DNA of 64,000 nucleotides from Diadema antillarum (Eukaryota): contig NW_027271365.1 in the NCBI RefSeq assembly GCF_040938485.1, positions 1,550,001-1,614,000 on the forward strand, given 5' to 3'. This document shows positions 3,599 through 52,094 of the stretch, one piece after another. Every line of letters starts with the position of its first letter. Position 1 is the first letter of the stretch. The position numbers were made by a program, and so were the translations under genes. The notes below the pieces were generated by a model that had not been told where the DNA came from, did not search any database, and saw only the letters and a program-made list of their open reading frames with translations.

Positions 3599-5846
3599 TA
3601 ATACAGAGAAGTTACACCTGAGCTGCCATACTCTGATTAATAAACACACCAATGCACCATACAAATAACCAACCAAAAAATAAACAAACAAAAACAAAAC
3701 AAAACAAAGCTCCCACACACCCCTAAACAAAGGCGCTTCTCAAGGGCAAATATCATAATTAGGTTAAAATGTGGGAAAAATCAAAGACACTAAGCATGCT
3801 AAATCAAATTTCAGAAACTTCCCTCCTGGACATAAAAAATTGCAATGTCTTTTAAAAGATATACTACTCGGTGGCATTGCAGATTGTACATTCACCTCTC
3901 CTCCCACGCCCCATCCCAAACATAAACAGAAAAATCCTCCCCTAGCCTCCTGGCCCTGCCAATCAAATCATCCCTTTCATAGATGGTCTATGAAACCAGC
4001 TGACCCTCAGTGACACGTTCCGTCTTGGCCATGCCGTTCTCAGGAGGCCAGGTTTCTGGCACGGACGAAAAATAATCGGGCGGTAATCGTGTTAGTCCCA
4101 CCAACCAATGTCCCATGTAACCTGATTACCTCGCACTCGCTTGTATCTTATGATAAATGTTCACCTGCCTTGTTGTTGTTTTCCTCCTTTTTTTTTAACA
4201 AAAAGAAGTTATTGTGTAGTCTTTGTTCAAGACTTGAAAATTTCTCTTTAAACCATTGTTGTCATTATAGTATCATCTTCTCGCATACAAATTGCAGGCA
4301 AATACTTAGTTATGGCTATGATATGAGTAATATCATAAAATGCCTGTAGTCGAGCTGATTCCTAAGATTTAGTGATGTCTTCATTTGACGGCAATTAAGA
4401 AATTGGACTGTGGATTTCCCGCAAACACATACTTTGGATACGCCTTTCCAATATCATACTGGAGAAATTGCACTGTGGGTTCACAAGGAGTCGACCTCAT
4501 CAAATCACTGTGCAGTCATTTACCCTGCGTCAAATGCCAGTGCTTCACGACCTCTGTTGGTTGACGCTGCGCCGCAAAATGCCAATCTGCCGGGCAATTT
4601 TCGCAAGGTGCACGTGATATGAGATCGCAAGTCGGAGTGTCACTTCCAGGCAAAAATATATTGACTACCCCTGGTAGACAATCACAGGCTACAAAATAAC
4701 TTTGCTGATGTTGGAACTCGGTAGCAAGCATTACGTGCCTACCTCGCAAGTTTTTGCCAGTCCCCTGTGTTGGCATTTCATGTGATCAGTCAATATGTGC
4801 AGAGTGCTAACAGCGTGGCCGGAGTTGCATTGATCCTGCTAACTTAGGCAATCCAATCGAGTGTGGTGGTGGGGGGGGGGGGGGAAGAGAGCAAGCAAGA
4901 AAGTGATAAATATCATTGCGCAGAACACTCCTGACTATCCAGGCTCTTTGTAGATGCCAAACAATCATTTTGATACATTAATTGCAGCATACCAGTATAG
5001 ATGACATGCAAAGTATGTGCCACTACGGTGGGTTTGGAATCATACTTCAATGTCCATCATGTAAGTGTGTTTGCAGTGACTACAGCAGAGCAGGTGCATT
5101 AATGACACTTACATCAATTAAATATGTTCTACAATTGATGTTTGATGCCACCAGTCACTACCAAAGTTTTACATACTTAAAAGGATTGTATACAGTAGTT
5201 AGAGAACAAAACAACTAAATGAAACATCTTAGAGAATTCACTCCCCCCCCCCCCCCCCCACCCAGCACCTTCTCTTGTTTATGATCCATACATATACCAA
5301 AAAACCTTTCTTTTAATTAGCTATGTGTTGAGTGAGCACAGTCTCGGTACCTTTGTTTGTTTGTTTGTTTGTTTTTGCCAAAAAAACAACCACCATCCCT
5401 TTCCCAACAACAGTGATTGCATCATCACTGTGTTGTCCTATATTATGTGACAAGTGATATTGTAAAGCCACAGTAATATTGTTACAAGTGCAATTTTGCT
5501 ATGACCAGCAATAGAAGGCACAACCTATATTATCCGAGCTGCATGAAATCCCAGGAACAAATCTTACACTGTAGACAAAACAATGCCAACAACAAGAACA
5601 ACAAAGATGCTCCTGGATAGAAAATTTGAGGAACAACTAGACACCACGATGCCTCCGGCAGTCTCGGGAGCAAAGGGGGCGTGGAGAAAGAGGGTAATGT
5701 GCATCCCCCGTATCCCGTGTCTCAGACTTAGGTTGTCACTGATCATCAACCTCTTTGTGTTCCAGCACACAGTGAACATGATTTGGGGAGGGGAAGCATG
5801 GAGTCTTGATGAGGATATAATATTTATTTATTTATGTTTTCTTTAA

Positions 5847-6234
5847 AGGGTGTGTACAGTTCTGGTTGAGGTGAGGATTTAGCTTTTAATGTTTTGCGAG
5901 ATATTAAGAAACCACTCTATGAGATGTCAAAAAGCATGCAATTCTAAGGGGTATCAAAAGTTTATTTGATGAAAATCGGTATTGAAATGGCTGAGATATC
6001 CAAAAACAAGGTGAAACAAAGATATCCTAATAAAAGGCGTGGCCTGTCGCCTTTTATTATTGTCACTTTTTTGGATATCTCAGTCTTTTGAAAACCAATT
6101 TTCATCAAATAAATGTAGAATCCTTCTTAAAATTACATGCTCTTTCATATTTCATATATAACAGGTTTCTCATTATCTAACTTAGGAATGTTCAAAACAT
6201 GAATCCCCACCTCAACCAGTACTGTACAGTCACT
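5847..6234. mobile_element. Kolobok-type MITE (family also at 10792 and ~37005)
   Basis: TTAA flanks (5843-5846, 6235-6238). ~31-bp imperfect TIRs AGGGTGTGTACAGTTCTGGTTGAGGTGAGGA / TCCCCACCTCAACCAGTACTGTACAGTCACT. Internal inverted motif GCTGAGATATCCAAAA / TTTTGGATATCTCAG. Confidence 0.8.
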
Positions 6235-7391
6235 TTAAAAGCAGGGTTGTTCCATTCAGAGCCACAATGGCCTGCTTTGCAAATAAAAGATAACAAAGAA
6301 ACTCTCTTACTTCAGGAAGAAGTGAAACATGAGCGTTCTCTCAATTGAGGAAGAAAAAGCAACAAAAACAGGAGGTCTTGCTACCCATGGATCATTCTCC
6401 ATCTAAGGAAGACAAGAAAGGTAAAACAACCAAAACCAGTCCCTAACTTGAGGAAGTAAAGAGCAACAAAACCAACAGGCCCCTCTAGCTAGGGAAGAAA
6501 ACAAGAAATGAACACAACAAATCCTCCACTTTAGAGAGAAAGGAGAAACAGAAACAACAACAAAAACAACTAATTTCCCCCTCTCCCATCCCCCCTTCCT
6601 TTTTTCACTGCCCAAGAAATGTACAATCACACAAAGTGCACAGCCACTTTCTAAAGTGTGCCTCCACAAAATGGGACATGAATAAGCAATTGGTGTACAT
6701 CTGGGTTCTTACTCAGTGTGACGAAAGCCGGAAAGAGAAGTGGGCTAATCAAGGGGAAGAAAAGGGGTACCACGGAAAGACTCTCTGGGGGACGTTCAAA
6801 CGAGGCACGATGCTGAAGAATCATGTTAAGGGCTGACATATAGGAATGAAATATTTGCACAGTGTTGACAATTCATTCAAATGTGGGAAATTCAGTAGTA
6901 GATGGAGATTAACAAGAGGCTGTCTGCACCAGCGACAAAAAAGCACTGTTGATTATAATTCTTTCCCTTTCTGTCTGTTTTCTTTATAAAAAAAATTGTT
7001 CAGATGGCTGATGACATCAGTTCAACACTCCATTTCATGCAACCTGTCGGTGAACAATGTCAATAGCATTGAGAGCTTGAGGTAATAAGAGGGATAATTT
7101 CACTGTCCCCAAGGGCAATATACTGGAATAAGTTCACTGTTGTCCTCCAAGGGTAACAGACTGGAATAAGCTCACAGAGAAAGTTTGTCTTTGGCATATA
7201 CTGAATTCTGTGCTGGAACCTTCAACGAAAAAAACAAAAACACACACACAAAGCATTTCAATATTTCCATCTCTGACAGTTCATGAACTTGTCTGACACA
7301 CAACCCTTATCGTCTCTCATCCCCATCCCCAAACTACAGAGTTGCTTTTCTGCCATTAGGGCATCAATGTTTTATATAGTCACTGATAGGG

Positions 7392-7816
7392 TGTTCAGAT
7401 GCAAAAGAATTGATACTAGAACGGTATAGCTATACCAAAACGGTACGGCTATACGATGAATTTAAACGTCTGAACACTGACTATCGAAATGACGTATAGC
7501 GAAACGACGGTCAGAGCATCGTTTCGAACTAGAACTCGATAACAAATCAGCATTCCATCGTGCCATTGAGCGTCTGAACGTATGGCAACCATAGATCGGT
7601 ATAACTGGGCTGGGCTTAATGGGAGCGAGCAGGAAAGGTGACCTTGTACCTGTCACTCATGACCATAACAGCATGTGCAGTGAGAAACTGCACATCTATA
7701 CAACTTTTTTCCGGAATGGTCAAAATTAGTGTCTGAACGGTCTTTCGGCTATTCGATAATTCTTTGCACGTCGTTTCTTTATCGAGTTTTGGTATAAACT
7801 GTCTTGCATCTGAACA
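7392..7816. mobile_element. Probable MITE with imperfect TIRs
   Basis: TGTTCAGATGCAA (7392-7404) and TTGCATCTGAACA (7804-7816) are inverted. Similarity extends imperfectly for ~35 bp (TATACCAAAAC motif). No clear TSD. Confidence 0.5.
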
Positions 7817-8056
7817 GAGGGTGATGTGCCTTGATAACTGATTGACTGAAATGAGACAATTGTTGAAATCACAATATTCAGCACAAGATTAACATGCCAT
7901 CTTTGCAACAGAATTAAGACAGAGAAAAAGCCCCTAGAAATCACTTCTTCATTTAAAATGTGTTTTATTTGATAATAAATCAAATTTCTAAAACAAAAAT
8001 TTTGATTTTCATTAGCACCAGAGCCTAACCCTTCAAAAAAAGAAGAAGAAGAAGAA

Positions 8057-9066
8057 AACTAGACATATCGCTACAGCTACTGATATGCCTCCGCCATAAT
8101 GCATGGTTCTCCTAATAGGTCTATAGTACAATGTCTTGACAATGTGTGATGACAGTTTCACACAACTGGCAAAATATTAAAAGGACAGGTTTGACACAAA
8201 TGTGCTGAATGTTCACTTTCCTAGAACTAGGTTCAATTGGATGAATGATTAAAATGTCAGAGTGCAGGTATTTGGGGAACTGATGATTTTTACTTCACTT
8301 TTGACCCTTTTATAAGTTTATGCATTGAGTAATTTTCAAGGTATTGAGGAAAAGTATAATTTCAGTATCAAATGGGAAAATAGCATTATCTAAACCTGGC
8401 CTTTGACCTTTGACCTCACAGTTCCAAAGAGAATCACTGTTAGGTTGAACATGCATAAATATGTCAGTTTCATGATGATACCTGGAGTTACTTTCGAGAT
8501 ATGGAGGAAAAAGTGCAATTTAGCACTTTCACTTGACCTTTGACCTTTGACCTTTTGGCAAGAAACTTCCCCAAAAATATATAATGAGTAATACATGCCA
8601 TACATCAAGTTAAAAAAAAAAAAAAAACCTTCAGGCATATTGCATTCTAAGGAAAGTAGTGATATTTTGAGGAGTTGACCTTGACCTTTGACCCCCTGAC
8701 CTTTGACCCACGACCCCAACTTCCCTATATAATCACTGCCCATCAGTACAAGCATATATACTAAGTTCCATGAAGATACCTTGAACCATTTGCGAGATAT
8801 GGAGAAAAACATGAAATTTCAAATTTTTTTTCACAAAATAACCTGTGACCTTTGACCTTTGACCCTGTGACCCTAAAATCCACACAAAGTATTATCCCCC
8901 AAGGATATACCCTCATACCAAGTTTGATGTAAAACCACCACACAGTTCTTGAGATATCGACAAAAACAAAACGGGACGGACGGACGTACGGACGTACGGA
9001 CGGACGGACGGACGGACGACCCGAAAACATAATGCCTCCGGCCACTTCGTTGCGGAGGCATAAAAA
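8057..9066 (+). mobile_element. Helentron-associated non-autonomous element (HINE/DINE-1-like)
   Basis: 5' ATGCCTCCG motif (~8085); 3' hairpin ATGCCTCCG-12nt-CGGAGGCAT (9032-9061) followed by an A-run; (ACGG)n microsatellite ~8973-9018; many TGACCTTTGACC motifs. Confidence 0.7.
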
Positions 9067-29900: not shown

Positions 29901-30313
29901 TTTGAATCAAAATTACTATGAACATGAACTTGTATGCAGAAAATACAATAGACACAAAAATGAACAATAAGTTTTATGGATTTTTGAAGGATTTTTTTAA
30001 TCTTTTGCCAGATAGAATCGATGAACTTGGGAGTTCAAGCTGCACGTATTTAAGGTTTGCATACCCACTCTATAAGCGCATGCTTTGTGTTGGTGAGGCA
30101 CCGCATAGCTGAAAGCTGACGACGTAAACAAAAGGCTAATATATTGGAAAATTGGGTAATTTTCAGCATACGTGTGTGTGAGTGGAGATGAGCTGCTTGA
30201 CAGAGGTCTGCACTCTCTGAGTGCTCTTCTAGTTCTCATTGCTATTAAAGTCCTTCAGAGGGGATGATTAACTCTTCATGTGCCATGGTGTAAACCAAAT
30301 GTGTGCCACATTA

Positions 30314-37004: not shown

Positions 37005-37403
37005 TTCTTAGATGGTTTATAAGGGTCTATAGGAAAACTGTACATTTTTTTTTGTTGCGAGATAATCAGAAACCATTTATGAAATATGAAAGAACATACA
37101 ATTCTAACAGGTATTCAAAGTTTATTTATTGAAAATCAGTTCTGAAATCACTGAGATATCCACAAAACAAAGTAAAACAAAGAAATCCTATTTGATTAAA
37201 GAAGGGTCCCACCGTTTATGAGGATCACTTTGTTTTGGATATCTCAGCCATTTCAAAACCAATTTTCATCAAATAAACTTTAAATTCCTCTCAGAAATAT
37301 ATGCTCTTTAATATTACATAAGAAGTTTCTCATTATCTTATTAAAAAAAAAAGAAGAAGCTGGAAGCATGAAGCCCAATTTGAAGCAAAACTATACCATC
37401 TCT
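37005..37403. mobile_element. Degenerate Kolobok-type MITE (same family as 5847/10792)
   Basis: Right end AAAACTATACCATCTCT|TTAA; internal CTGAGATATCC / GGATATCTCAGCCATTTCAAAACC. The left end is eroded, so the start is approximate. Confidence 0.6.
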
Positions 37404-37774
37404 TTAAGGGATAGCTATAAGCTGAATATTCATTGATTAAATAAGGTTTTATGAACAATCCATCAAAGTAATCACCAAACGTTTGTAATTGCATTACAAA
37501 AGGTAATCTAAAAAGCATGTTTCCAAATGCTTTAACGTAAGGAGGCAGTACACTGGGCCGTTACACAGGATGTAAATTGTACATTGTACAAGAACATCCG
37601 GTAAACCTGTGTGGGTGTTCTAATGAGCAGGAAAAAAAAATCATTCCTGTGGTCGCTGGAGACATTGAACATGAAAAATGATTAAAAAAGAAGCAAATAA
37701 CCATAAAATTCACCCACTCACTACTTATTATGCAAGGACGGGAGTAAAATCAATGTTAATGTCATCAATGTAGT

Positions 37775-38025: not shown

Positions 38026-41000
38026 ACATACCTACATCAGAAAACAGGTGAAGGATACCAACCCCCTATGCTTCGCCCCAGGTGATTAGCAATAGTCAGT
38101 AAACAGCATCAACTCAGTACATTGTACCATGAAAAGATGAAGGAGATCAATACACTGCAGAATAAAGACTGTGAAAACCTTTGGAATATTGCTGCATTGC
38201 TCCTTTTCGCTGAACTTCCTGAGCACTGCAATATGAAGAGTCTATACTAGAGCTTCACAATATCATCTTTAATATGTGAATTTTGGTACTGCAAATGCTG
38301 CAGACACTTAGCTTTACAGCAAATATGTCAAATGTCCCATTTTATTCAATGAAAGAAACAACAACAAAACTCCATATAAATCTTGAGAAAGCTGCCCCCA
38401 TATGAACTTAACTCTTAATGTGCCAGGCCCAAAACCCCTAACGTGCCAGAGATTTTTAGCCAGTGCTCGGAAGCTCCGAATCTGGATAGACAGGGTAATT
38501 TCAAACTGTCATATCTCTGTAATTACTGCTTGTTTTGAAATGTTGTCTGCACAAAAAATGTGGAGAAATGGTAGTTCTTTCGTGCCATGTCGTCAGTTTG
38601 CAGTAATATTTATCCTAATTTGAAATATTGCTGAAAGAAATCATATCATAAAAAAATTATTAAGAAATTTTGGGTAGCATGAAAAGGAAGAATTAATTGT
38701 GAATTTTCTTCAATAGAACGTGTGTTTGACTCTGTGACAAAGTTTTAGATATACATTTTTTCTTTCGAATGATACCACATTTGTCAACTAGAGTCGTATA
38801 CTTTCAAAGATATTCGCAGTTTGTTTTGCCCATGCAATTTACTTTTTTGACCGAGTAGTTCATTCCCAAACTTTGGTTATTTAGTCCCGGTTCCTCTTTG
38901 AGAGTAAAGGTAATTGTCCCGGGTCTTGGAGGAGAGTCTTTCCACTCTTTTATCCATTTGAGCAGGAAGTGCCAACAGTAATCCCTCTTTTGTTAGTGTG
39001 AGGGGCGAGCGTGCCCTATTGAAATCGGCAGTCCTTTGTCGGTGAGGGGCTCGTTGGCGTGCGAGCCCATGGTCACAGGCGGAGATAATCCGAGGATGCC
39101 TTGAACAATGTGCTACACTTTCGGACCAGAAAATATCTTATTGACAATGCGGCGCATGCCTTCCTTATTATTTCATCAAAAGTCTACGAGTAATCGATCA
39201 ATGGTCAGTTCCTTGTTTTGCGTAGCTACCCACCACCAAAGCGATCGCGGCATGACTAAAGTGTAACCTTAGTAACTTCATAACAACGACGCGTGTTTGG
39301 CTCACAACAAGCGATTTACTCACAGCACCACGAGGACAGCCGCTGAAACCTGCAGTTGAAGCCACGTGCTTGTTGCGCCTAGCGCTGGTTGAAACCAGAT
39401 ACGTGGAACAAAGTGGAATTTGAAAATATAGCACTACACATATCTACATAATCCTCATTCTGAAACGTTCACCAGATTTTGAAGAGCAATCAGACCCTCA
39501 TCTAGGTCTAATATTCCCGCGAACTGTATGCGAACATCGTTTTGTAGGAATATGAAATTCTCAAACTAATTAGTCCATTTCAAAATGAAGGACATAATGG
39601 CACACAGACCAAGAACTACACATCCATATGAAATAAACAAAGGTTACTGATAGTTCATTTGCGTGCACTGCAGTGCGGTGATTCGGGGGGGGGGGGGGGA
39701 GGCGTAAAGAAAGGGAGAGAGTGATTTTTGGTTTGCGTATTTCTGAATATTTCAAAAGATTTTGATCGGTAACAATATCATTGTTTACTGAAATTATTTT
39801 GGAGCTTAGTGAGTTTCATTTTCGTATCGCACCAATATTATGACCATGTGAAAAAATCTATTACTTTGCTTTTTGACGTGATCGGTACATTGGGTGTTGG
39901 GTAACACTTACAAACAGAATATCAGCGATATTAGAGGTATCCCAGAAATTGTACTTCACTTCGGAAAAGTGTTTTGATGCTGGACCTTCGCATGACGGCA
40001 GATTCATTTCCCGACATTTTAACCGCTAACGTCTCACAACCTTAGTAATATCGGAGAAAACTGCAAAATCAGAATGTAAAGTCTAGCACTCATCCGTCGC
40101 GAAAGTCATGCATCCACACATCAAAGAATATGATCAAGTCAAGCACGCATCCTTATGTTTTGAAAAAAAAAAAGAAAATATATATAAAATTGTTAAACAT
40201 TATATGATTAGTATGATCACGTTATTTGAGGTAAAAAAAAAAAAACATGAGGGAAAACATTTGAGGTGCAGTAAAAACTAAAATCTTTCCAACAAAATTA
40301 CCATGATGCAAAATGATAGAAAGAGAGAATCAAAGGACTTCAAAAATCATCGTACCCGTGTAGCAGCTATAAAGAAGAAGGCAATGCTGGTAAGTGGGAT
40401 TGAGCCGCCGGGGCAACAAAATATCAAGCAAAGAAACAAGATGTCAATCAATCAAACAAACAAACAACGAAAAGAAACTACAAACATAAAGACAACCTTT
40501 AGAAACTCTGCTAATGTGGGTTTTTTTGATGTCATTATCTCTCTTTTGAAATTACGTCTCCTTACTCGCTAATCGCTCCTGATTAGTTTACGTTATTCAG
40601 CAGTATAGTCAATACAGCTATCTTCTGTCGGAAGATCTGAGGCGCTTTTCTTATTGCTGCTAATTCTGTTCACTACACGTCTTGTAACTCAGAGTGTCAT
40701 CTTTTTCTCTAGCAGAAACAGTATTTACACTCTATACTGTCGAAGTTCAGTCGTCCCGGTGTAGCGTAGAATGCTAGCTTCATTATTCATACTTTTCTTT
40801 ATCAATTTTTATGATTTCGATCACTGATCGTGCCTTTGCATAAATCAAAGTATGTGCTCTGTCTCCCCCTCTCTTTCTCTCTCCCTCACTCTCTCTTTAT
40901 ATCTTGCCCCTCAACTTCTTCATTTCTGATCGTTGACTTGTTATTCACATTAGGCATAATTGACTGTGAAGTTACGATAATCTCAATGTCAATAGTAATC

Positions 41001-43107
41001 ACTATCGCTGCAAAGGAAGGGGGAAGTTTTCGCCGTCTGGTTCATGAGTTCAATTAGATACGCTCAATGATGATAATAATTATACATAATAAATGAATGC
41101 ATGTACACGCCAAATACAGAATGAGCTGTTTTTCACGTTTGTAGTTCGTATACACCCATGCAATCACTCGTATGCTGTAGGATGCATATAGGATGATGCT
41201 TCATTTCGCTACAAACTGAAGGGTTTCAAGGAATGAATGCAGAACACAGGTGGTACTGAAACTCATATTTTGTTGTGCACAGAAATGAAGCAAAATATGC
41301 TATAGGCAAAGGGAGTCGAAGTAATTCCTGTCAAAGATTAATTTGGAAACGTGTTTTACTGACCTAAAAACTCAAACCATGTTCAATAAAGCGTAGGTGT
41401 CACGCTAGTATATAAGTTTCATTCACAGGCTTCGACTATAACTATCATAGGGCTCTTCTAGTCTTCATAAAACATGTATCGTTTTCTTGCAGCTCCGCGA
41501 TGCTCACTGCATTTGAAAGTCGACCGAAAGAACTCTCACAAAAGGCGAAGTTTGTATATGCTTATACTGCGTTTATTCATGAACTAAAGCTTTCTTTGAA
41601 CATGCAAAATCTTCACAACTTATGCTACCATCAGGGGAGGTCTCTTGAATTCTTGGTTTCTGTTCTGTACGTTGCTCTGATTGACTCTTCTTTCTTGGTA
41701 AAGACCCTATCTGCGCTAATGATAATCATTTCCTATTTTTTCTCACAGTCTGTCGAAATCAGAGGCCTTCCTTGAACACCCTGTCATTACCACATTCTTC
41801 ATACAAGGTACCCCACGTATTTCAAGTACCTGTATACAGCTTGTTGATTTTCTTTTTTTGATAACAATTAGATGCATTACTGACATAATCACTTCTTGAA
41901 AAATGTACACGAAAATCGTTGGTACAATGCATACAGTCAATCCACGTTGCTATAGACATGATGGAGGATGGTTATGGAAATACATGTACGGACCCATCAC
42001 AACAGCCACGTCCCACCGGTATCGAGACAGGAGTAATGCAACTGGAATGGACAGAATTTGAATCTGTTTTGAAAATTGAATAATACAGAGCTAAAAAATG
42101 ATAGTTTGATTTTTTTAAGAACATGTGAATACCTCTAGTATCCAAAATTCACGGAAATGGGTATTGTACTGCCCGCGATCTTCAATTCTGATCTGTGGTA
42201 ACAGCGAGTTCTTCAGATCGGCGACGCTAACATCAAGACGGCGCAGCCTCCCGTGTTGGACAATGATCATGGCTGTTGGCTGTGTCGCGCATGTTCAGAA
42301 CATAATGATCTGCCTGATTAGCGTCCTCTTAGCGTTTGCGAGGCAAATCTTTGGTTCGTGTTTATACCACTGTGTGGTCAAGATGAGAGAGATGAATGGC
42401 AAGTTTTATGATTGAAACTTGTCTGTGTTCTTTCTTTCCTTTTTCTCGCAAAAGCTGATTGCTTTTCTTATAGGCTACAACACGGTATTATGTATCCTGA
42501 AGAAGCTTTGCAAAGCGGAATAAACAAAAAAATCTGACTGCAGCATGAAGGAGAAGCATTTTATGTTCTGCTTTACATGGTACATATTTTGTCCTATACT
42601 ATTATGACAGAGAAGAAGCGCCGTCTTAGGTTATCAAGCGCAGTCGTTATAACATTACTGTCAATATATATATATATATACTTCTATATACATGTCGGTA
42701 GAAAAGATGAAGAAGTAGAATGGTAATGAATTTTGAAAGTCCGAATGTGCTAATAAATAGCACTGTTGGACTGTCAAAATGCATTACCACTCTACTTGTT
42801 TATCTTTTCTTTACTGGTACCAACACGCGGACTATGAGTTTCATAATACATAATCATAATCTATATATATATAGCATACAAGGTGAAGCGGCTTGGCCTC
42901 CTACGTTGTGGGTGCTGCATTATATTCATGTGTAGGTGTGACGGGAAAGACTGCTCGCAGATGTTGCAGTAATGTTCACTAATAGCCTTTTACTCTCCCA
43001 AGCTTTCGACCGAGTTACCAGTCTTTTTCAAGGGCTTGGAACGTAAACACAAAAGCAGAAAAGCAACCAATTTGCATACATTTGAACAGAATAAGGCAAA
43101 ATCGTAT

Positions 43108-43109
43108 AT

Positions 43110-43152
<43 letters not shown>
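43108..43152. repeat. (TA)n microsatellite (more at ~43334-43380 and ~43597-43637)
   Basis: TA dinucleotide runs. Confidence 0.9.
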
Positions 43153-43156
<4 letters not shown>

Positions 43157-43161
43157 CACAA

Positions 43162-43281
43162 CAGTAGGTCAATATAAACTCCGTTGGAGACATAAATTTG
43201 ACGCATTTTCGCCCATAGGGCTTTGTCAAGTCAATACATTTGACACTTTACGTCTCCAACGGAGTTTATATTGACCTACTG
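43162..43281. mobile_element. 120-bp MITE nested in the piggyBac element
   Basis: Perfect 30-bp TIR CAGTAGGTCAATATAAACTCCGTTGGAGAC / GTCTCCAACGGAGTTTATATTGACCTACTG. TA follows on the right (AA on the left). CAGT…ACTG ends suggest Tc1/mariner/pogo. Confidence 0.8.
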
Positions 43282-43332
43282 TAGTGAATCTATACTTTCT
43301 TAGGACTCCGAGAAGAAACTATTTGTTGCTGT

Positions 43333-43370
<38 letters not shown>

Positions 43371-43596
43371 ATATTATACATATAAGAGAGAGAGAGAGAG
43401 AGCGAGGAAGAGAAGGCGCCTCGACCTTGTACAGAACAAGTGTACATGTAGCTACTTCATTATTCATCCAGGGTGAGAAGATAAGGGCATTCACGAACGT
43501 AGTTCAACGAATGTGTGTATACTGTATATACGTGAAACATGTACGTTATCTATACGTCCATGAATGCCTTTATCTTTTCCCACTCTATATATATGA

Positions 43597-43641
<45 letters not shown>

Positions 43642-44451
43642 TGTGTCTTTTAAATCGACATGGTAATGGTTTATTGAAATGAATGTACTTCATTTTATTA
43701 CAATGTTTAGTTCGTTGACATATTTGATGAAACTTAGATTTACTGACTAAAATCAACTGCATGATAATTATAATTTGTCACAATTATTAACGCGTTTGAA
43801 TCTGCTGGGAGAAAAGGTACAATATAACAGGGAAAAGGTAAGGTTGACATTCGCAATTGAATTACTGCCAGTTCAAAACATTCATTCCCAATTATTTTAC
43901 GAGTGTTTACAGACCGATATTCTTGTTTCGACAGGATATTTTCATGTATTTCCATAGTTTGACCAACGAAATACTGACACATGTTTTTCGAATGTAATAG
44001 ACCATGACCAAGGTTGGGTGTCAAGGCCTTCTTTTGTTTGAGGCGGTCTTTCGGTAGGCGCTTTCATCTATGCAAATAAGGCACTCTTATTGTATCCGCG
44101 GTGAGGTGGCGGTGGCCATGAAACATCTATTCACGCGTGCCGCGTCTTTATTATGGGCTAGGTTTTGGAAATAGGCGGTACTCTTTCTTTTCAGGTCTTT
44201 CAAACGAAAGTTTTATTCTAGAGCTATAATAACCTTTGCTTATACGTGATTGGCGAAGGTATCGAACGTTGATAGTTTTAATCCTGCTATTCTATCACCC
44301 GAACTGATCACATTGACTTACATAAGAAGGGGGAAATTGCCAGTGATCATCATTTATCTCGATCTCTCCTGCGATTCAACAACGTTACTGCTTCATAATC
44401 TCTAAATACTCTATCAGTCTCTCCTGAATGAGCTAAAGTGTGCTCGCTTCT

Positions 44452-46299
44452 ATGGCTCCACCGAGAAAACGGCGAAGGCGTGAGTTCACTGCCGAGGAGG
44501 TCCGTGATTTCATGTTGGACTCTGACTTCGAAATCGAGGATATTGTAGATAACAACTGGGAAGAAGACACGCAATCATCTCGTAGCAGTGAAAGCACAGA
44601 AGAACGTGATTCCTCACGTCTTCTCCCGGAGTTTGAAGAGCACGGTGAATCACTGTTTGAAGACTCGTCAGGCGACGAAGCTGATGGAGGTGACGATGAC
44701 CACCTCAATGATCTACCTCCGCCTCATCCAACAACTCATGCTGAACCACTCTCCGATCACGATTGGCGGAGACTTGAGCCTGACGAGCGATTCAAGTCAA
44801 GTCGACGAGTGTATGACGACCAACCCAGACTACTTTTCGACGCTGAAGGATTGGAGCCAGTGGACTTTTTTACGAAGTTCTATCCGACTCCCATCTTTGC
44901 CCACATAGCAGATGAAACGAACAAGTATGCGCAACAATTCTTCGATTGCCCAGCGCCCCTCCCAGAGGCTTCTCGATTCGGCGTATGGCTGGACACCGAT
45001 GAGGAGGAGATACGCGCTTTCACCGCACTTCAAATAGCGATGGGACTGGTGTCAAAGCCATCTGTGCCTCAGTACTGGGAAACGAACTCCGACATCTTAG
45101 TGACTCCTGGGTTTGCCGACGTCATTTCCAGGAATCGATTTCAGCTATTGAACACCTTCCTTCATTTCAATGACAACGAGAAGCTCGTGCCCCGTGGACA
45201 GCCCGGTTTCGACCCCCTTCACAAGACGCGCCCCCTCATCGATATGTCACAGCCGACGTACCTTGAGCATTTCCTTCCCGGGGGATACCTGTCAATCGAC
45301 GAGAGCTTGGCGCCGTTCAAAGGAAGAATCTCCTACAGACAGTACATCCCAAACAAACCACGGAAATGGGGGATAAAATTCTGGATGCTCTGTGACGCCC
45401 AAACGGGATTTTGTCTGCGGTGGCGGCAGTATGTCGGAGCCGAGGGACAAGACAATGGGGACAGCGCCACTGAAGCCCTGGTGAAACAGCTGACGGAGCC
45501 ATTCTACAACACGGATCGCGTGATCGTGATGGACAACTATTATAGTTCCGTAAAGCTCTACGAGGATCTGTCACGGAACGGACTTGGAGCCTGTGGAACG
45601 GTGAGGAGCAACCGACGAGGACTTCCAGAAGAGATCCGACGTGGTGGTCTGCACCTTGCGAAAGGTGACGATCCCGTGTTTTTCGCCAAAGGGAGGGAGA
45701 TGTCAGCAGTGACTTGGCATGACGTGAAACTCGTGAACGTGCTGTCGACCGTCAGCAGCAACGATCTCAAACAGAAGCAGATACGGAGTAAGAACGCCGA
45801 AGGAGGTCGCCGTACGATTCAGAAGCCAGCAACTGTTGACGTGTACAACAGGTTCATGAACGGCGTGGACAAAATGGATCAACGCATGTCCTACTACCGC
45901 TACCCTCATAAGAAAATCAAGGGATACCGCGTAACCTACCACTTCACCATGGAAGTAGCTCTCGTGAACGCTTACATCGCATTTCGCATGGCTGGCCACA
46001 AGATGTCCACGCGCGACTTCAGATGTCGGGTGATTGAGGGTCTGCTGAACGGCTACAGAGCATCTCGCTATCGTCGGACACCGTCACCTCCCATCGCCGA
46101 CAACGAGGCAAGACTGACTGAGCGCCACTTCCCAGCAGAGTTCGAAGATCGACAACATCGTCCTGACTGCTACGTGTGTTCGGACCGCAGGAGGGGAAGG
46201 CGAAGACAGACGAGGACATACTGCCGACAATGTGGACTTGCTATGTGTTGCATCCCGTGTTTCGAGATCTACCACACCAGAAAAGATTTCCGATCATAG
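44452..46299 (+). CDS. piggyBac transposase (PGBD4-like), 615 aa, intact
   Basis: Single uninterrupted ORF (first ATG 44452; the ORF track starts at GTG 44440). Basic NLS-like PPRKRRRR and an acidic N-terminus. Catalytic DDD triad in YLSIDESLAPFKGR, VIVMDNYYSS and MNGVDKMDQ. C-terminal cysteine-rich domain CYVC…YCRQCGLAMCCIPCFEIYHT. Confidence 0.96.
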   Translation: MAPPRKRRRREFTAEEVRDFMLDSDFEIEDIVDNNWEEDTQSSRSSESTEERDSSRLLPEFEEHGESLFEDSSGDEADGGDDDHLNDLPPPHPTTHAEPLSDHDWRRLEPDERFKSSRRVYDDQPRLLFDAEGLEPVDFFTKFYPTPIFAHIADETNKYAQQFFDCPAPLPEASRFGVWLDTDEEEIRAFTALQIAMGLVSKPSVPQYWETNSDILVTPGFADVISRNRFQLLNTFLHFNDNEKLVPRGQPGFDPLHKTRPLIDMSQPTYLEHFLPGGYLSIDESLAPFKGRISYRQYIPNKPRKWGIKFWMLCDAQTGFCLRWRQYVGAEGQDNGDSATEALVKQLTEPFYNTDRVIVMDNYYSSVKLYEDLSRNGLGACGTVRSNRRGLPEEIRRGGLHLAKGDDPVFFAKGREMSAVTWHDVKLVNVLSTVSSNDLKQKQIRSKNAEGGRRTIQKPATVDVYNRFMNGVDKMDQRMSYYRYPHKKIKGYRVTYHFTMEVALVNAYIAFRMAGHKMSTRDFRCRVIEGLLNGYRASRYRRTPSPPIADNEARLTERHFPAEFEDRQHRPDCYVCSDRRRGRRRQTRTYCRQCGLAMCCIPCFEIYHTRKDFRS

Positions 46300-47671
46300 G
46301 TCACAAACACTGAGTCTTCTGATGACATGAACTCTAAACAATGTCATGAACTTGTCGTGTATAGGCCTGTCTACCGTTGCTTATAGAATATACATGTTCA
46401 AATTACAGCTCACAGATGGCAAGCATTTCCAGGTGCATGATTCATTGTAATTACATGGACATTATTGGTTTTACGATCCAAGACTGAGATGTATTGAAGT
46501 ATAATCGCGATATCTGTCTGAACTTCACCCCAAAAGAAACGTTCCGTGTACTCTCACTTGTACTCATTTGCATGTACACAAAACCAGGTGGTTATTGTCT
46601 GTCAAATCGATCCCAATTACCAATGATTATGTCATTAGCCAGGGTAACGTGAAATCTTTAGACATGAATTTCTCTGCCAAGTTATCTCTCATATTACATT
46701 GCCTATTTACAGTGTACACACAATGTATGTACATTTCAATAATGGTGATATTCCCGTAATTGTAAGGATTGGTTATTTATTATCCGTAAGTCTTCGAAAT
46801 AGTAATTAATAGCATTAAAAAAAATCAAATACTGTACAAAGAGATAAACGTTCATATTGATGATATGGTTATACACAAAATATCAATGACAATGTGATAA
46901 TTAATTGAGATGTAGCTCACAAGTTCTTGTATTATCAGAAAAGGTTGATATTATGGGTCAAATCGATCCCCATGAGTAACCAGTGATATGCCAGTGATTG
47001 TGCCACTAGCAAGTTTATTATCAACTTGTACTAGTAATTTATTTTGTATACATACATATGTCCGACAAATTATGAAATTATGGATTTGTGTAGTGCTCAT
47101 TACACTTACAATGTATACTTGTCAGTGGCAATTCTGAATCTCGATGGTATATTGTCGTGTTTATGAATTCAATGGTGTATCTTATCAAACTTTAGATTAT
47201 GTGGGGTTATTTATGTCATTGTGTAATTATTCCTTGGCTCTTCAACAATAAGTAGCCGCTGTCATGATTTTACAGCGAGTTCCACGATCGCATTTGAATA
47301 AGTAATTGTCATATCACCACATATTACATGCATGTAAGTTGTCAATGTAAGAGCAGTGAATTCTTTTCCAGATATCACTAGTCATCGTGTGAATGAGGAA
47401 TTGAAAATAAAGCATTATTCACAGTGACGAGTGAAAGAGATAAACTATACTCATCTGTTTCTTATTTGTAATTTAATCAGCGTTGCTGAGTGTGTAATGT
47501 CAGATCAAAGCTGATCAATTATAGTGAGATTGCAAAACTGAAGTGTATGTAACTACTGAAGGATACTAGTAGTATCTAGAGTTATTGACGAGAGAAGGTG
47601 CAATGTATATTCAGTAACAGGTTGTATATGTGGAGTGAGATCAGTTTGAAGAGAGAATACTATTGCCAGAA

Positions 47672-47674
<3 letters not shown>

Positions 47675-47711
<37 letters not shown>
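47675..47711. repeat. (GA)n microsatellite
   Basis: GA run just upstream of the N gap. Confidence 0.9.
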
Positions 47712-47713
<2 letters not shown>

Positions 47714-47759
47714 TGACGAATGGAAATGGAACTCGACGTTCCAAAAATAGTTATCTATG

Positions 47760-47996
47760 NNNNNNNNNNNNNNNNNNNNNNNNNNNNNNNNNNNNNNNNN
47801 NNNNNNNNNNNNNNNNNNNNNNNNNNNNNNNNNNNNNNNNNNNNNNNNNNNNNNNNNNNNNNNNNNNNNNNNNNNNNNNNNNNNNNNNNNNNNNNNNNNN
47901 NNNNNNNNNNNNNNNNNNNNNNNNNNNNNNNNNNNNNNNNNNNNNNNNNNNNNNNNNNNNNNNNNNNNNNNNNNNNNNNNNNNNNNNNNNNNNNNN
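47760..47996. other. Assembly gap (N run) inside the piggyBac element
   Basis: Continuous Ns. Confidence 0.99.
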
Positions 47997-50900
47997 GGTC
48001 GTCAGTTTCTTCTTCGCCTAAAAACACAAAATCAAATAAACAACCGACAAACAAGACTCAAAAGCACACATACAAACAAAGCAAGAGTATGATTATTAGC
48101 ACACTTAGTTGCATGTAAGGTTGGAAAAGTATAATAAGCGAAGCTGAAAACATGCACAACAAAGGAATTCATCAAATCATACACTCCATGCAAACGTACT
48201 GTACAACAACGTCAACATGTAAGCTAACAGTTTTTATATCCGCATCAAATCATACGAGACGCAAGGTACGAAGAAACAATGCACGAAGCCTTGTACAGCA
48301 ATTCCTCTTTAGAGTATATAGTTCTCCCCCCCCCAAAAAAAAAAAGAGAGAGAGAGAGAAAAAAAAAGAAGAAATGAAATTCGCCAATAGGGTATTAGTA
48401 ACAACAAGAGTTTGAGAGACAAAGCGATTCTGTCAGAAAGAGAGAGAGAGAGAGAGAGAAGGGACAGGTGGATATTGAGGTTAACGTTACAACAATAATT
48501 TGAAGTTATTCATATATCATAGAGAGATATAATAATTTTACCTCGACTTCTTCACTTATTTTGTGAAGTAAAGATTTGAGTTAACGACATTCTTGTATGA
48601 CCAAATTGCACCAATTATTGAATATTGAAAAAGGCTGCGTCTTGATCGTTTGTATGGATAGTACCCCTCCCCCCCCCCAAAAAAAAAAGAACACACACAC
48701 ACATATCAAACAACACACAAACAAGAATCAAGGCAAGTTCCACAACAAAAGGTTTGATTATACGGGTACACTTAGTTCTATCTTAGATTAGAACAAAAAA
48801 GCTAAGCTAAAAAAAGGTCAAAATCACGTTGCACTTTGCACAAATTACGTAAAACAGCGTCAGGTGTCAAGTAAGACAGCCTACAGTACTGTGATCTGTT
48901 GTATTTGCCAAATTTATTCACGAAATTTTGTAGAAGAGGAAGTGCAAGAGAGTTGCTCGCCAAGTATATGAGGAGCTCATTGATACACAACAACAATAAG
49001 AAGAAATAAAGACATATCGCGGTTCGATTCATTGCCCAGAAATGTCAAAAGTAATATCTTTATTTTGTATTTCCGATGGATTTTTCACCGAGTCAAAAAT
49101 CCGTTATAAAACGATCTTCAGAAGTGTAACGTCATAATAATTTGCAGCCCTCGATACGTACGATAACAACAACAGAAATGAAAACACGGCGCACTACGCG
49201 GTGCAGATAGCAATAAGGTTCGTAAGTCCACAGGGTTTTAGTGAGAGTTTAGTCAGTTTGAATGACTTCCGCTATCTTGGAAAGTCCTTCACGTACGTTT
49301 TTGGATTTGATCAATGTCAACATTGGAATTCCTTTTGTTGACTAGTTTTGTTGAGCACTTTACCATTTTGCAAAACATGGGACACTTATCGTCAGAAGAA
49401 AGTACACAATAAACGCATACAAAGGGCCAAAAAGATAGGACATTAGCTATCGCGATGTGTGCTTTGTGAATGTCTATGAATCGTTTACTATGTATACAGT
49501 AGGAGAGCGGATCGTATCACCGAACGCCTTTTTTGTGGCTTTGAATTCAGCACAAAGTGGATGAAATGTCTGCAAAAAATAACACCGGTTATTCACAAAG
49601 TCCTGAAAATACGAATTCAGCAAAAGTACGCAAATTATTCACTCAGGTTTTTGGAGAATAGGCTTCAAGTATATCTTTCTCTCCAAAAATTTAAAAAAAA
49701 ATCAAAAGTTGTCTTTTACAACCGCAAAAAAAAAAATCGCATTATAATTAGGTACATGATTTTCGTAATGGCATAGTCAATGCTTTCACATCTTGTTCTT
49801 GCACCAGAACCACAATTCTTACCCAAGGTTCACTACATGTACCTACTAGTATTCTTACCGAGGGGAGGACAAAGAGAAAAAGAATCGGCTAATGAGGCTC
49901 ATTTTTTTTTCTCACCGCAAAATGTCTAATACGAACATTTTGAATAGTTCCCATGATAAAATCTTGCGATAAATCGACATCTTCTTCTAAATCTGAGGTA
50001 AAATGTGAATTTCTTAACGTTTTTGCATTTTTGTGTTGCATTCTATTTTTGCGGTTTCGGTCCTTATAAACGATTTGTGAGGCCAGTCTACGAGGTCCCG
50101 CGAGTATTGAAGATCGTAAGTACGCAGAAATATGCGTACGAAATTACTATGATGTCGGGCACTACCATACCAGCTGCATTATGTATTCAGTACTTCCCTT
50201 TCTCAAGGTGTGTATATCGAACTCTTTCTAGCGCTAATGATATTATGTAATGACACATTCATACACAAATGGGGACTATACCTGGGTATTTTTATACCCT
50301 TTTCACCTCCCCCTCTTTTTCTACCATTCTGTCTTTAGTCCTAAAGTACGCCAACCTAAATTTCTCCTGGTATTCACTTTCATTTGAACAAGGAGACCGG
50401 CAATGACAGGCTAAAAACAATGACGATCACGTCAACGCAAATTATATGGATGTGCCGTGCGGCTTAGTTCACGAGTCAAGTTTTCGCTTGCTGGTACGCG
50501 TGCATACACAAGGACAAAGGCGTTTTCTTCTTTTGTATCTGATTGTATGTAAGCGTCGGGACGATTACAGTACATCAAACAGACAAAAGGATGAAAGGCT
50601 TGACCGTCAAAATAAAAGCTGACCTTCTCTGAGGGACAAAATGAAAGCATGCTTTCAGCCGTCCCGCAGGACAGCATCCAAGCGGAACAAGACGACTGGA
50701 ACCTCATAGAAAAGACACGCAGACTCAATAGCGTACACACGCGTGGTTTACCAATGAGACTTTTGATTTATACACAGCTCACAGAGGGTGCGCTCACGCC
50801 GAATTTTCCCGGCGCGAAGAAAACATACCTTGTCGAAAAATCATGAATTTACTCTAAAAAATCCTATGTAAGCATACACAAATATTTAGTTCAAACGATA

Positions 50901-51004
50901 GATACACTTATCTGCTATCATTATATATCAATGGCAGTTTCATAGTGCAAGTAATTATGATACCACAAACATTTTAATGAGCAGGAGTTTTCTTGCTCTT
51001 CTTA

Positions 51005-51072
51005 GTCGCCGATCGGCGACCATGGCACGTCAGGACTATGGTCGCCGATCGGCGACCATGGCACGTTAAGAG
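51005..51072. repeat. Duplicated subterminal palindromes of the piggyBac right end
   Basis: GTCGCCGATCGGCGAC (51005-51020) and ATGGTCGCCGATCGGCGACCAT (51038-51059) are perfect palindromes. Each is followed by (CA)TGGCACGT, the TIR core. Confidence 0.9.
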
Positions 51073-52094
51073 TTAATATGGGGCTAACCTCCCTTCGACT
51101 TGATATATGACCATGAGTAATTTCTTGTGCTCAGTCAAGTAAAATGAATTTCATATTTTTAATTCTGCAGAATTAAAGCTATACAAATATTACTACATAT
51201 TACATGTAAAAACATTTGCATTCTTTTAATTTTCGTTCTAGTTTCATATTGCGTGAAATGGGTGAAAATGTCAACACCTCTAAAACGTACTCTTTTACAG
51301 TAAGCCCATGAGAGGTGCTGACTGGTAAAGGAGGCATACAAGTGCATAAGCTGATCAGCAAAAACCGCAAAGTATTCAAAGGCAAAAAAAAAGAAAGAAA
51401 TTATAGAAATGCAATATTCTTTAAGACTGAGAAAAGATGACACATCAAAAATCATTCTTGTTTGTCACTCAGTTTACTACATTGTGTACACAGCCGTATG
51501 TGCCATCACTAGCACATGTGGGGCCTTTTCTACAGACAGTAACAACCAATCGGAAACATACTCCAGTACATGGAAAACCATTGCATTTGTAAATCAATAT
51601 CATGATTAATTGCAAATCCTTGTGATGGGGGTGGGGGGGGGGGGGGGGGAATTGCTTGTCTGATAACCTAGGCTCTTCACGACTACGATTTGTATTTCCG
51701 GAGTCCAATATTAGGAGATTACTCATTATATTGAACTCAGGATTCCTCAATCACACTTCACTGTCATGCATCATCATCATCTCATTGTTCTTTAAACCCT
51801 TTCTATACCAGGGACTTTGAAAAGTGTGTACAAAGCTATAGGGTTCTTGGTACCAATTAGCTCTCCTAGCACTAAAAGGGTTATCAAACTGCTTAATGGG
51901 ACTAGGCAGCCAATGCATTCAATCTACAGGGTGCTACCACATGTCAGATGCAATGGGGCAATACTGCTCCATGGCACACACACAGCTGACCAAACAGATT
52001 AGTATCATTTGATGCTGCCACTGCCAATCACAAAAGCCACGGTACCGCAAGAGATACAAGGATGTAATGAGAGAAGTGGATGACTATCACTCAC

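Follow-up and report, generated by a model that had tools for sequence, protein, structure and literature searches.

A probable autonomous piggyBac transposon of about 15 kb, with TTAA-poor and apparently non-coding arms, in the sea urchin Diadema antillarum

The analyzed window is a stretch of 64,000 nucleotides from Diadema antillarum (assembly GCF_040938485.1, contig NW_027271365.1, positions 1,550,001 to 1,614,000 of the forward strand), and coordinates given without a further label refer to it. At 38412-51072 it carries a 12.66-kb element in which an intact piggyBac transposase gene (44452-46299, forward strand) lies between two long arms. A TTAA target-site duplication stands on the left (38408-38411) and on the right (51073-51076). 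An earlier note on this DNA, made from the letters alone, had described TTAA-bounded ends enclosing a central transposase, with arms of 6.0 kb on the left and 4.8 kb on the right. The junction letters and the Pfam match of the open reading frame (ORF) confirm the former, and the arm sizes are correct for the window copy.

The transposase is encoded by a single exon of 615 amino acids, within an ORF spanning 44440-46299 whose first ATG is at 44452. It matches PF13843 (DDE_Tnp_1_7) with an E-value of 1.4e-86 over profile positions 2-349 of 349, and aligns to piggyBat of Myotis (PDB 9c0f, E 7.5e-45) and to the piggyBac of Trichoplusia ni (T. ni; PDB 6x67, E 5e-37). The motifs lsIDE, mDNYY and GVDkmDQ are kept in the alignment, and these three Asp-bearing motifs align with piggyBat 9c0f; their D-D-D residues are presumably catalytic. 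The protein also presents an N-terminal PPRKRRRR motif and a C-terminal Cys-rich domain, of which residues 572-613 align with the piggyBat C-terminus at a weak local score (9.6 bits). A CxxC...CxxC...C..C..H pattern is discernible there, with the arrangement of Cys and His kept.

The genome searched is an assembly of 1,754,659,819 bases in 2,963 contigs. Similarity searches against it score the best 40 matches, and first-look candidates, where mentioned, are an unscored tally. Searching for the transposase yielded 31 intact, near-identical copies of 615 amino acids (100% after rounding) and about 10 broken ones, the window copy being intact. A different piggyBac family was also observed in at least eight copies (on contigs C198, C456, C714, C864 and others), with an intact frame of 597 amino acids and 32% identity to this transposase. 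Further piggyBac families in the genome lie at 29-35% identity to it, and a sister family is on C476.

The left junction of the element reads TTAA and then CTCTTAATGTGCCA, and the right junction reads TGGCACGTTAAGAG and then TTAA. The terminal inverted repeats are 14 nucleotides long, match at 13 of 14 positions and have C as their first base; the classic CCC...GGG start is missing. The left end module (38412-38451, 40 bp, forward strand) comprises the 14-bp inverted repeat CTCTTAATGTGCCA and, 23 bp inward, a second of its two TAAYGTGCCAG motifs. The right end module (51005-51072, about 68 bp, forward strand) comprises two 31-bp repeats 36 bp apart, each consisting of the palindrome GTCGCCGATCGGCGAC followed by CATGGCACGT, and the outer one ends in TGGCACGTTAAGAG. 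Both modules are likely to be binding sites of the transposase. Both inverted repeats (38412-38418 and 51066-51072) contain an inner TTAA that starts after the first three bases (CTC-TTAA-TG...), and each junction consequently reads TTAACTCTTAA; the true boundary is the outer TTAA, according to the empty allele described below. The TTAA duplication, the PF13843 core, the Cys-rich C-terminus and the C-starting ends with subterminal repeats place the element in the piggyBac superfamily.

A search of the element with the end motif finds matches only at its two ends. Hence, no inner pair of ends exists in it, which bears out the claim that no closer pair of terminal repeats lies near the ORF. In the window, the 18-mer composed of TTAA and the terminus occurs three times, against 0.01 expected, and the third occurrence, at 30268, is a related lone terminus. 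This piggyBac-type terminus (30268-30310) reads TTAA and then CTCTTCATGTGCCATGG, with a second GTGCCA motif 24 bp inward, and no partner end for it was found within the window. Outside the element, the left flank holds a dispersed repeat of about 196 bp at 37212-37407 (about 5,500 first-look candidates, 80-84% identity), and the right flank one of about 190 bp at 51112-51302 (many copies, 73-78% identity).

The element belongs to a family of about 40 collinear giant copies in the assembly. The left 300 bp and the right 300 bp each have at least 40 matches at 99-100% identity, and left and right matches fall together on contigs, mostly at a distance of 14.7-15.1 kb. Eight other copies were retrieved, all of which open with TTAA and CTCTTAATGTGCCAGG, close with CATGGCACGTTAAGAG and TTAA, and are collinear over their whole length. 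The flanks are distinct in seven of the eight; those of the C113 and C587 copies are shared, the two being one locus on two haplotypes, both filled. A TTAA stands on both sides of 9/9 giant copies and of 10/10 short relatives. Substitution divergence among the copies is 0.28%, and the BLAST identity of 98-99% between them mostly reflects indels and differences in microsatellite length. A check for full-length copies that share the arms at different TTAA sites, proposed in the earlier note, thus found many. On C1974, the 500-bp left flank of the copy (124289-124788) recurs at 141357-141855 with 99% identity, 1.8 kb past the right end, which reflects a duplication of the locus across the insertion or else an error of the assembly.

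Given that 84.4% of BUSCO genes are duplicated in the Diadema antillarum draft (bioRxiv 10.64898/2026.05.24.727502), the assembly contains both haplotypes, and the empty-site check could be run in silico. The left and right flanks of the window copy both match contig C736, and the two matches overlap by exactly four bases. This allele reads ...CATATGAAC TTAA TATGGGGC..., so that the flanks are joined through a single TTAA and the whole 12.66 kb is missing to the base; the window copy is thus on one of two assembled haplotypes. The same was found for the C2063 copy, whose empty allele is on C17, and for the C37 copy, whose empty allele is on C30, with a single TTAA each. Insertions are therefore hemizygous at 3/4 assessable loci, the C113/C587 locus being filled on both haplotypes; the flanks of the C1974 and C316 copies consist of repeats or local duplicates. 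As seen in the empty allele, the insertion site of the window copy is the loop of a small palindrome, CCCCATA...TTAA...TATGGGG (38395-38411 with 51073-51084).

The flanks of filled and empty alleles differ by 2-11%, against 0.28% between copies, which indicates that the burst is much younger than the allelic variation. Movement of the family in this sea-urchin genome appears to be very recent. That the arms are host DNA or segmental duplicates is refuted by this difference in divergence and by the empty sites. Equally, the arms are not single-copy host DNA, an outcome that would have overturned the earlier proposal: they are shared by about 40 copies and are absent from the empty allele. The copies and the empty site on the other haplotype also bear out the idea of a giant piggyBac moving as one unit.

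These results are best explained by an autonomous cut-and-paste piggyBac transposon whose normal form is about 15 kb and whose arms are non-coding passenger DNA, a reading to which we give a probability of roughly 0.85. The 615-amino-acid transposase would bind the 40-bp left and the roughly 68-bp right modules, each with two GTGCCA-type motifs at different spacings, cut out the entire unit at the TTAA on its flanks and put it back into a different TTAA. Tandem duplication, the expansion of microsatellites and the nesting of repeats would have enlarged the 11-13 kb next to the gene. This passenger DNA would have been carried long enough for reshaping, its two 2.26-kb units now being 12% apart.

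Although the size of 12.7 kb reported previously is right for the window copy, it does not describe the family. The canonical full copy is 14.7-15.0 kb long (left arm 8.3 kb, gene 1.85 kb, right arm 4.6 kb), of which the window copy is a deletion variant. In full copies a unit of 2.26 kb is present twice in tandem, at 3695-5935 and 5936-8225 of the C2063 copy. The second unit stops about 90 bp upstream of the ATG, and the two units differ by 12.1%. The window copy has a single hybrid unit (42100-44364), whose start matches unit 1 and whose remainder matches unit 2: its first 1.05-1.2 kb or so corresponds to unit 1 (99-100% identity to the closest copies over the first 1,000 bp, against 87% to unit 2), and the rest to unit 2 at 98-99%. 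One unit was thus lost by a crossover within about 43375-43612, a (TA)n zone.

Other size variants exist in the family. The C961 copy also lost one unit, with a different breakpoint, and the C98 copy is reduced to 5.66 kb by a large internal deletion and still lies between TTAA duplications. Copies of 22-24 kb were observed on C30 and C666. The C316 copy has a unique insertion of 1,909 bp in its right arm (L035:856-2764), which starts with TC, ends with a GC-rich hairpin and CTAG, and sits between A and T; by these hallmarks it is a putative nested non-autonomous Helitron. The right flank of the same copy (L035:7316-7639) is a very young repeat of about 323 bp, 97-99% identical on 39 scored contigs, with about 3,000 first-look candidates.

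The two units are 12% apart, roughly 40-fold the difference among copies. Provided that rates were similar and that no diverged unit was imported later, an active lineage would have carried the long left arm since well before the present burst.

The right arm of the window copy is interrupted by a run of 237 N at 47760-47996. Over 200 bases to either side, the sequence is collinear with seven gapless copies at 99.5-100% identity, and these copies hold 204-240 bases opposite the gap (237 and 235 in the two closest). The gap shows no sign of a misjoin, an error that the earlier note had considered fatal to its own account. ORFs spanning the N run are artefacts, the region being non-coding.

The arms were examined for what they might encode or share with other DNA. 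The unique left arm (38452-42099) is 99-100% identical in about 40 copies, with no ORF longer than 125 amino acids and no Pfam match. When its 39100-42100 portion was used as query, the scored matches were all giant copies (75 first-look candidates). The right arm (46300-51004) contains, besides the N gap, microsatellites of the (AG)n type and, at 49022-49215, a stretch of 194 bp that is missing from one subfamily. The latter was considered as a nested miniature inverted-repeat transposable element (MITE), which would indicate growth by accretion; this reading was rejected because both of its edges carry a GGTTCG microhomology, which speaks for a deletion. For 49300-50400, the best 40 of about 900 first-look candidates were all giant copies. 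Altogether, the arms hold (TA)n and (AG)n microsatellites, two foldbacks and the tandem duplication. One foldback, nested at 42700-42810, has 53-nucleotide arms that are 85% complementary and is a dispersed short repeat, a relative of it outside any giant copy giving 1,003 first-look candidates on many contigs. Among all loci compared, these 111 bp are the only part of the arms with relatives outside the element, and elsewhere in the window no similarity to the arms was found.

No gene was recognized in this DNA, which makes up the non-coding share of about 87% of the element. No ORF in the arms exceeds 125 amino acids, and the longest looks low-complexity. All 94 stop-to-stop frames of at least 45 amino acids in both arms were compared with Pfam, and the best match, to a domain of unknown function, has an E-value of 3.6e-4, which is not significant over 94 queries. 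No Rfam family reached its gathering score and no transfer RNA (tRNA) was found, nor was any ribosomal RNA detected by Rfam in a full copy with its 500-bp flanks. The proposed cargo of captured genes is thus unsupported, and the extra DNA looks like non-coding passenger DNA. Two classifications were rejected on the same scans: a virus fusion like Teratorn, since no arm frame matches a viral domain in Pfam, and a gene-carrying transposon, since the ORF, Pfam, Rfam and tRNA scans returned no gene other than the transposase.

The arms also differ from the ORF in composition and variability. They are 61-64% AT, against 53% GC in the ORF. Across seven independent copies, 4/1845 sites vary in the ORF (three of them synonymous), 4/1315 in the ends and 46/7455 in the arms, so that the density in the arms is three times that of the ORF (Fisher P = 0.03). 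These values are no more than suggestive of selection on the parts. The CpG observed/expected ratio is 0.73-1.05 in the arms (0.73-1.06 within the element as a whole), 0.39-0.58 in the surrounding window and 0.31-0.36 in the empty alleles. This indicates that the arms are not local host DNA and shows nothing beyond that: other young repeats and some background (around C555) are also near 1.0, and the genome looks mosaic for CpG depletion.

The giants are only about 40 of the elements that carry these ends. Allowing up to two mismatches, the genome has 509 occurrences of a left 42-mer that takes in the TTAA and 337 of a right 41-mer, against 0 for control patterns, and hundreds of the matches are shorter, non-autonomous elements. 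Most of these relatives are 1,153 bp long, differ from one another by 4-7%, and share about 630 bp on the left (73% identity) and about 520 bp on the right (80%) with the giant. Others are 2.6-7.4 kb long, with unrelated interiors, and some of them are 99% alike. Subfamilies that are otherwise 20-27% diverged agree completely, or almost so, in the outermost 40 bp of the left end and about 68 bp of the right end. An old, degraded relative on C236 has about 0.7 kb between the ORF and DNA matching left-arm position 1,400 or so, against about 6.9 kb in the giant, and has no recognizable termini.

Three other explanations were weighed against this evidence. The arms could be functional non-coding cargo, such as a long promoter or enhancer, anti-silencing insulators or a non-coding RNA gene, instead of ballast. 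The giant architecture did last while the units came to differ by some 40 times the divergence between copies, and both arms are kept in almost all autonomous copies. In addition, the duplicated unit ends just before the ATG, which fits a promoter or enhancer, the tandem repeats of Pokey occupy the same position upstream of the transposase (PMC3849761), and the arms exceed their surroundings in CpG ratio. However, the copies lacking a unit (the window copy and that on C961) and the deletion copy on C98 still lie between TTAA duplications, and the 1,153-bp relatives spread with just about 630 and 520 bp of the ends. Moreover, Rfam finds nothing in the arms, and variability is higher in them than in the ORF or the ends. 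On balance, we regard functional cargo as unlikely, though worth keeping in mind.

It is improbable that the arms hold a captured or element-specific protein gene that the ORF and Pfam scans missed on account of short exons or a novel fold. A eukaryotic gene may indeed be split into exons below the scanned 45-amino-acid frames. Nevertheless, the longest ORF of 125 amino acids looks low-complexity, none of the 94 frames has a Pfam match that survives correction, the arms are AT-rich with microsatellites in comparison with the GC-richer ORF, and their density of variable sites is three times higher. Finally, that the outer repeats belong to a larger carrier or to host DNA in which the transposase is a separate insertion, or that the whole is an artefact of assembly at the N gap, is very improbable and largely refuted, since no end motif lies inside the element, about 40 copies all share the full architecture, the entire 12.66 kb is missing to the base from the empty allele and the gap flanks are collinear with gapless copies, while the short distance between ORF and left-arm sequence in the C236 relic, which would favor this view, comes from a copy without recognizable termini that cannot define closer ends.

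Beyond its length, the transposon is poor in its own target. A full copy has 24 TTAA in 14,715 bp (1.63/kb), two of which lie within the inverted repeats, against 112 +/- 11 expected per full copy in a first-order Markov simulation. The arm segments individually present 1.4-2.2 TTAA/kb, and the arms together 1.87/kb, with an observed/expected ratio of 0.45 under a second-order model. In comparison with the second-order expectation of 52.8 TTAA for the arms, the Poisson P is 7e-6, and in comparison with the background density P is 1e-10. About two thirds of the TTAA to be expected are gone from the arms. The 1,860-bp ORF has no TTAA, which is uninformative given that 0.5 are expected. Three background samples (50.7, 40 and 33 kb) present 5.1-5.8 TTAA/kb, with observed/expected ratios of 0.98-1.05, and 25 sliding windows beside the element present 4.6-6.2/kb. 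Composition-matched tetramers are undepleted in the arms relative to the background (AATT 0.82, TAAT 1.06, ATTA 1.08). The Helitron-like insert of the C316 copy has 4.7 TTAA/kb (observed/expected 0.91), the 1,153-bp relatives 3.5-5.2/kb (0.78-1.16) and the 2.6-7.4-kb relatives 1.9-4.5/kb (0.63-0.95).

In cell assays, autointegration of piggyBac increases sharply above 4 kb, length and number of target sites being inseparable there, and productive transposition drops steeply with size (PMC3952818). Given the TTAA-poor arms and this rise of autointegration with size, we propose that the arms were purged of the element's own target. Every internal TTAA would be a chance of suicidal self-integration or of a hit by the family's roughly 500 relatives, and the cost of such sites would grow with the length of the element. 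Selection against self-integration or against hits by the family itself is a possible source of the shortage, though we would stop short of even odds on it. More tentatively still, the shortage could be an adaptation permitting gigantism, in which the lineage stays long only by purging its own targets. No report of such TTAA depletion was found in literature searches, which is not proof of its being unreported.

Several points weigh against the interpretation as a whole. A gene split into short exons, or a non-coding RNA with a function, may be present in the arms, and the lower diversity of the ORF in comparison with the arms is weakly significant. An exact empty allele fits a site that was never occupied as well as it fits precise excision, and mobility is deduced from copies and empty alleles and not from direct transposition. 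As for the proposed purging of targets, the mid-size non-autonomous relatives are mildly depleted (0.63-0.95), with no clean trend with size, and the depletion could stem from the source of the arm DNA instead of selection.

In comparison with known systems, the element is long. Natural piggyBacs span 1.23-9.51 kb in one survey, the longer ones including an element of Lytechinus variegatus (PMC10813416). Pokey of Daphnia reaches 9.8 kb, or about 4.5 kb without repeats (PMC3849761), and Teratorn of medaka, a fusion with a herpesvirus, is 180 kb long (PMC5601938).

The closest analogue is Pokey, given its long repeat-bearing 5' region and its end-sharing MITEs. In both elements a long 5' non-coding region has tandem repeats immediately upstream of the transposase, the inverted repeats are short and imperfect, and the targets are TTAA. 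In the companion MITEs, likewise, nothing but the ends of the element recurs (160 and 350 bp for Pokey, about 630 and 520 bp for Diadema). However, the Diadema element is 14.7-15.0 kb long, with long arms on both sides, whereas Pokey is at most 9.8 kb. The repeats of Pokey are 200-bp units of the ribosomal DNA (rDNA) spacer and its target is 28S, whereas the Diadema repeat is a 2.26-kb unit; the seven distinct giant flanks are not rDNA by look, no formal rDNA test having been run.

With T. ni piggyBac and piggyBat, the element shares the DDE_Tnp_1_7 core, the three Asp motifs, the C-terminal Cys-rich domain and the TTAA duplication. In T. ni piggyBac, the terminal repeat is 13 bp and the internal one 19 bp long, with spacers of 3 and 31 bp. 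The Diadema ends are similarly asymmetric, with terminal and internal repeats whose motifs are spaced 23 bp apart on the left and 36 bp on the right. Yet the element is about six times as long as that of T. ni (2.5 kb), and its termini begin with CTC, with a TTAA three bases in, and not with the CCC of T. ni piggyBac and piggyBat. Among piggyBac-like termini, the first C alone is conserved (PMC5381638).

Teratorn resembles the Diadema element as a natural piggyBac far over the usual size that is still transposed as a unit, but is full of herpesvirus genes, whereas the Pfam scan revealed no viral or other recognizable gene in the Diadema arms. Engineered vectors show that this enzyme family moves cargo well beyond 15 kb, hence the mobility of the Diadema element is mechanistically plausible. 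One study of a giant piggyBac vector reportedly used about 100 kb. Published vectors include giant ones (PMC3239208) and one of 207 kb (PMC3634665). These constructs are artificial, whereas the Diadema lineage is natural and kept its large size with TTAA-poor arms. The family is set apart by its record non-viral length, its long two-sided non-coding arms and its TTAA-poor interior, and the D. antillarum draft genome preprint makes no mention of piggyBac (bioRxiv 10.64898/2026.05.24.727502).

The only natural piggyBac larger than 9.8 kb among the compared cases is the virus fusion Teratorn. A mostly non-coding element of 15 kb, with about 40 near-identical and largely hemizygous copies, suggests that a natural piggyBac can stay highly mobile despite the heavy losses that cell assays predict for its size. 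The TTAA-poor arms lead to a hypothesis on a trade-off between length and target specificity, which bears on transposon evolution and on high-capacity vectors. If true, this would be natural evidence of autointegration shaping the sequence of a eukaryotic transposon, and would provide a design rule for large piggyBac vectors, namely to strip TTAA from the cargo. The family also contributes structural polymorphism to the genome of a species that matters to conservation.

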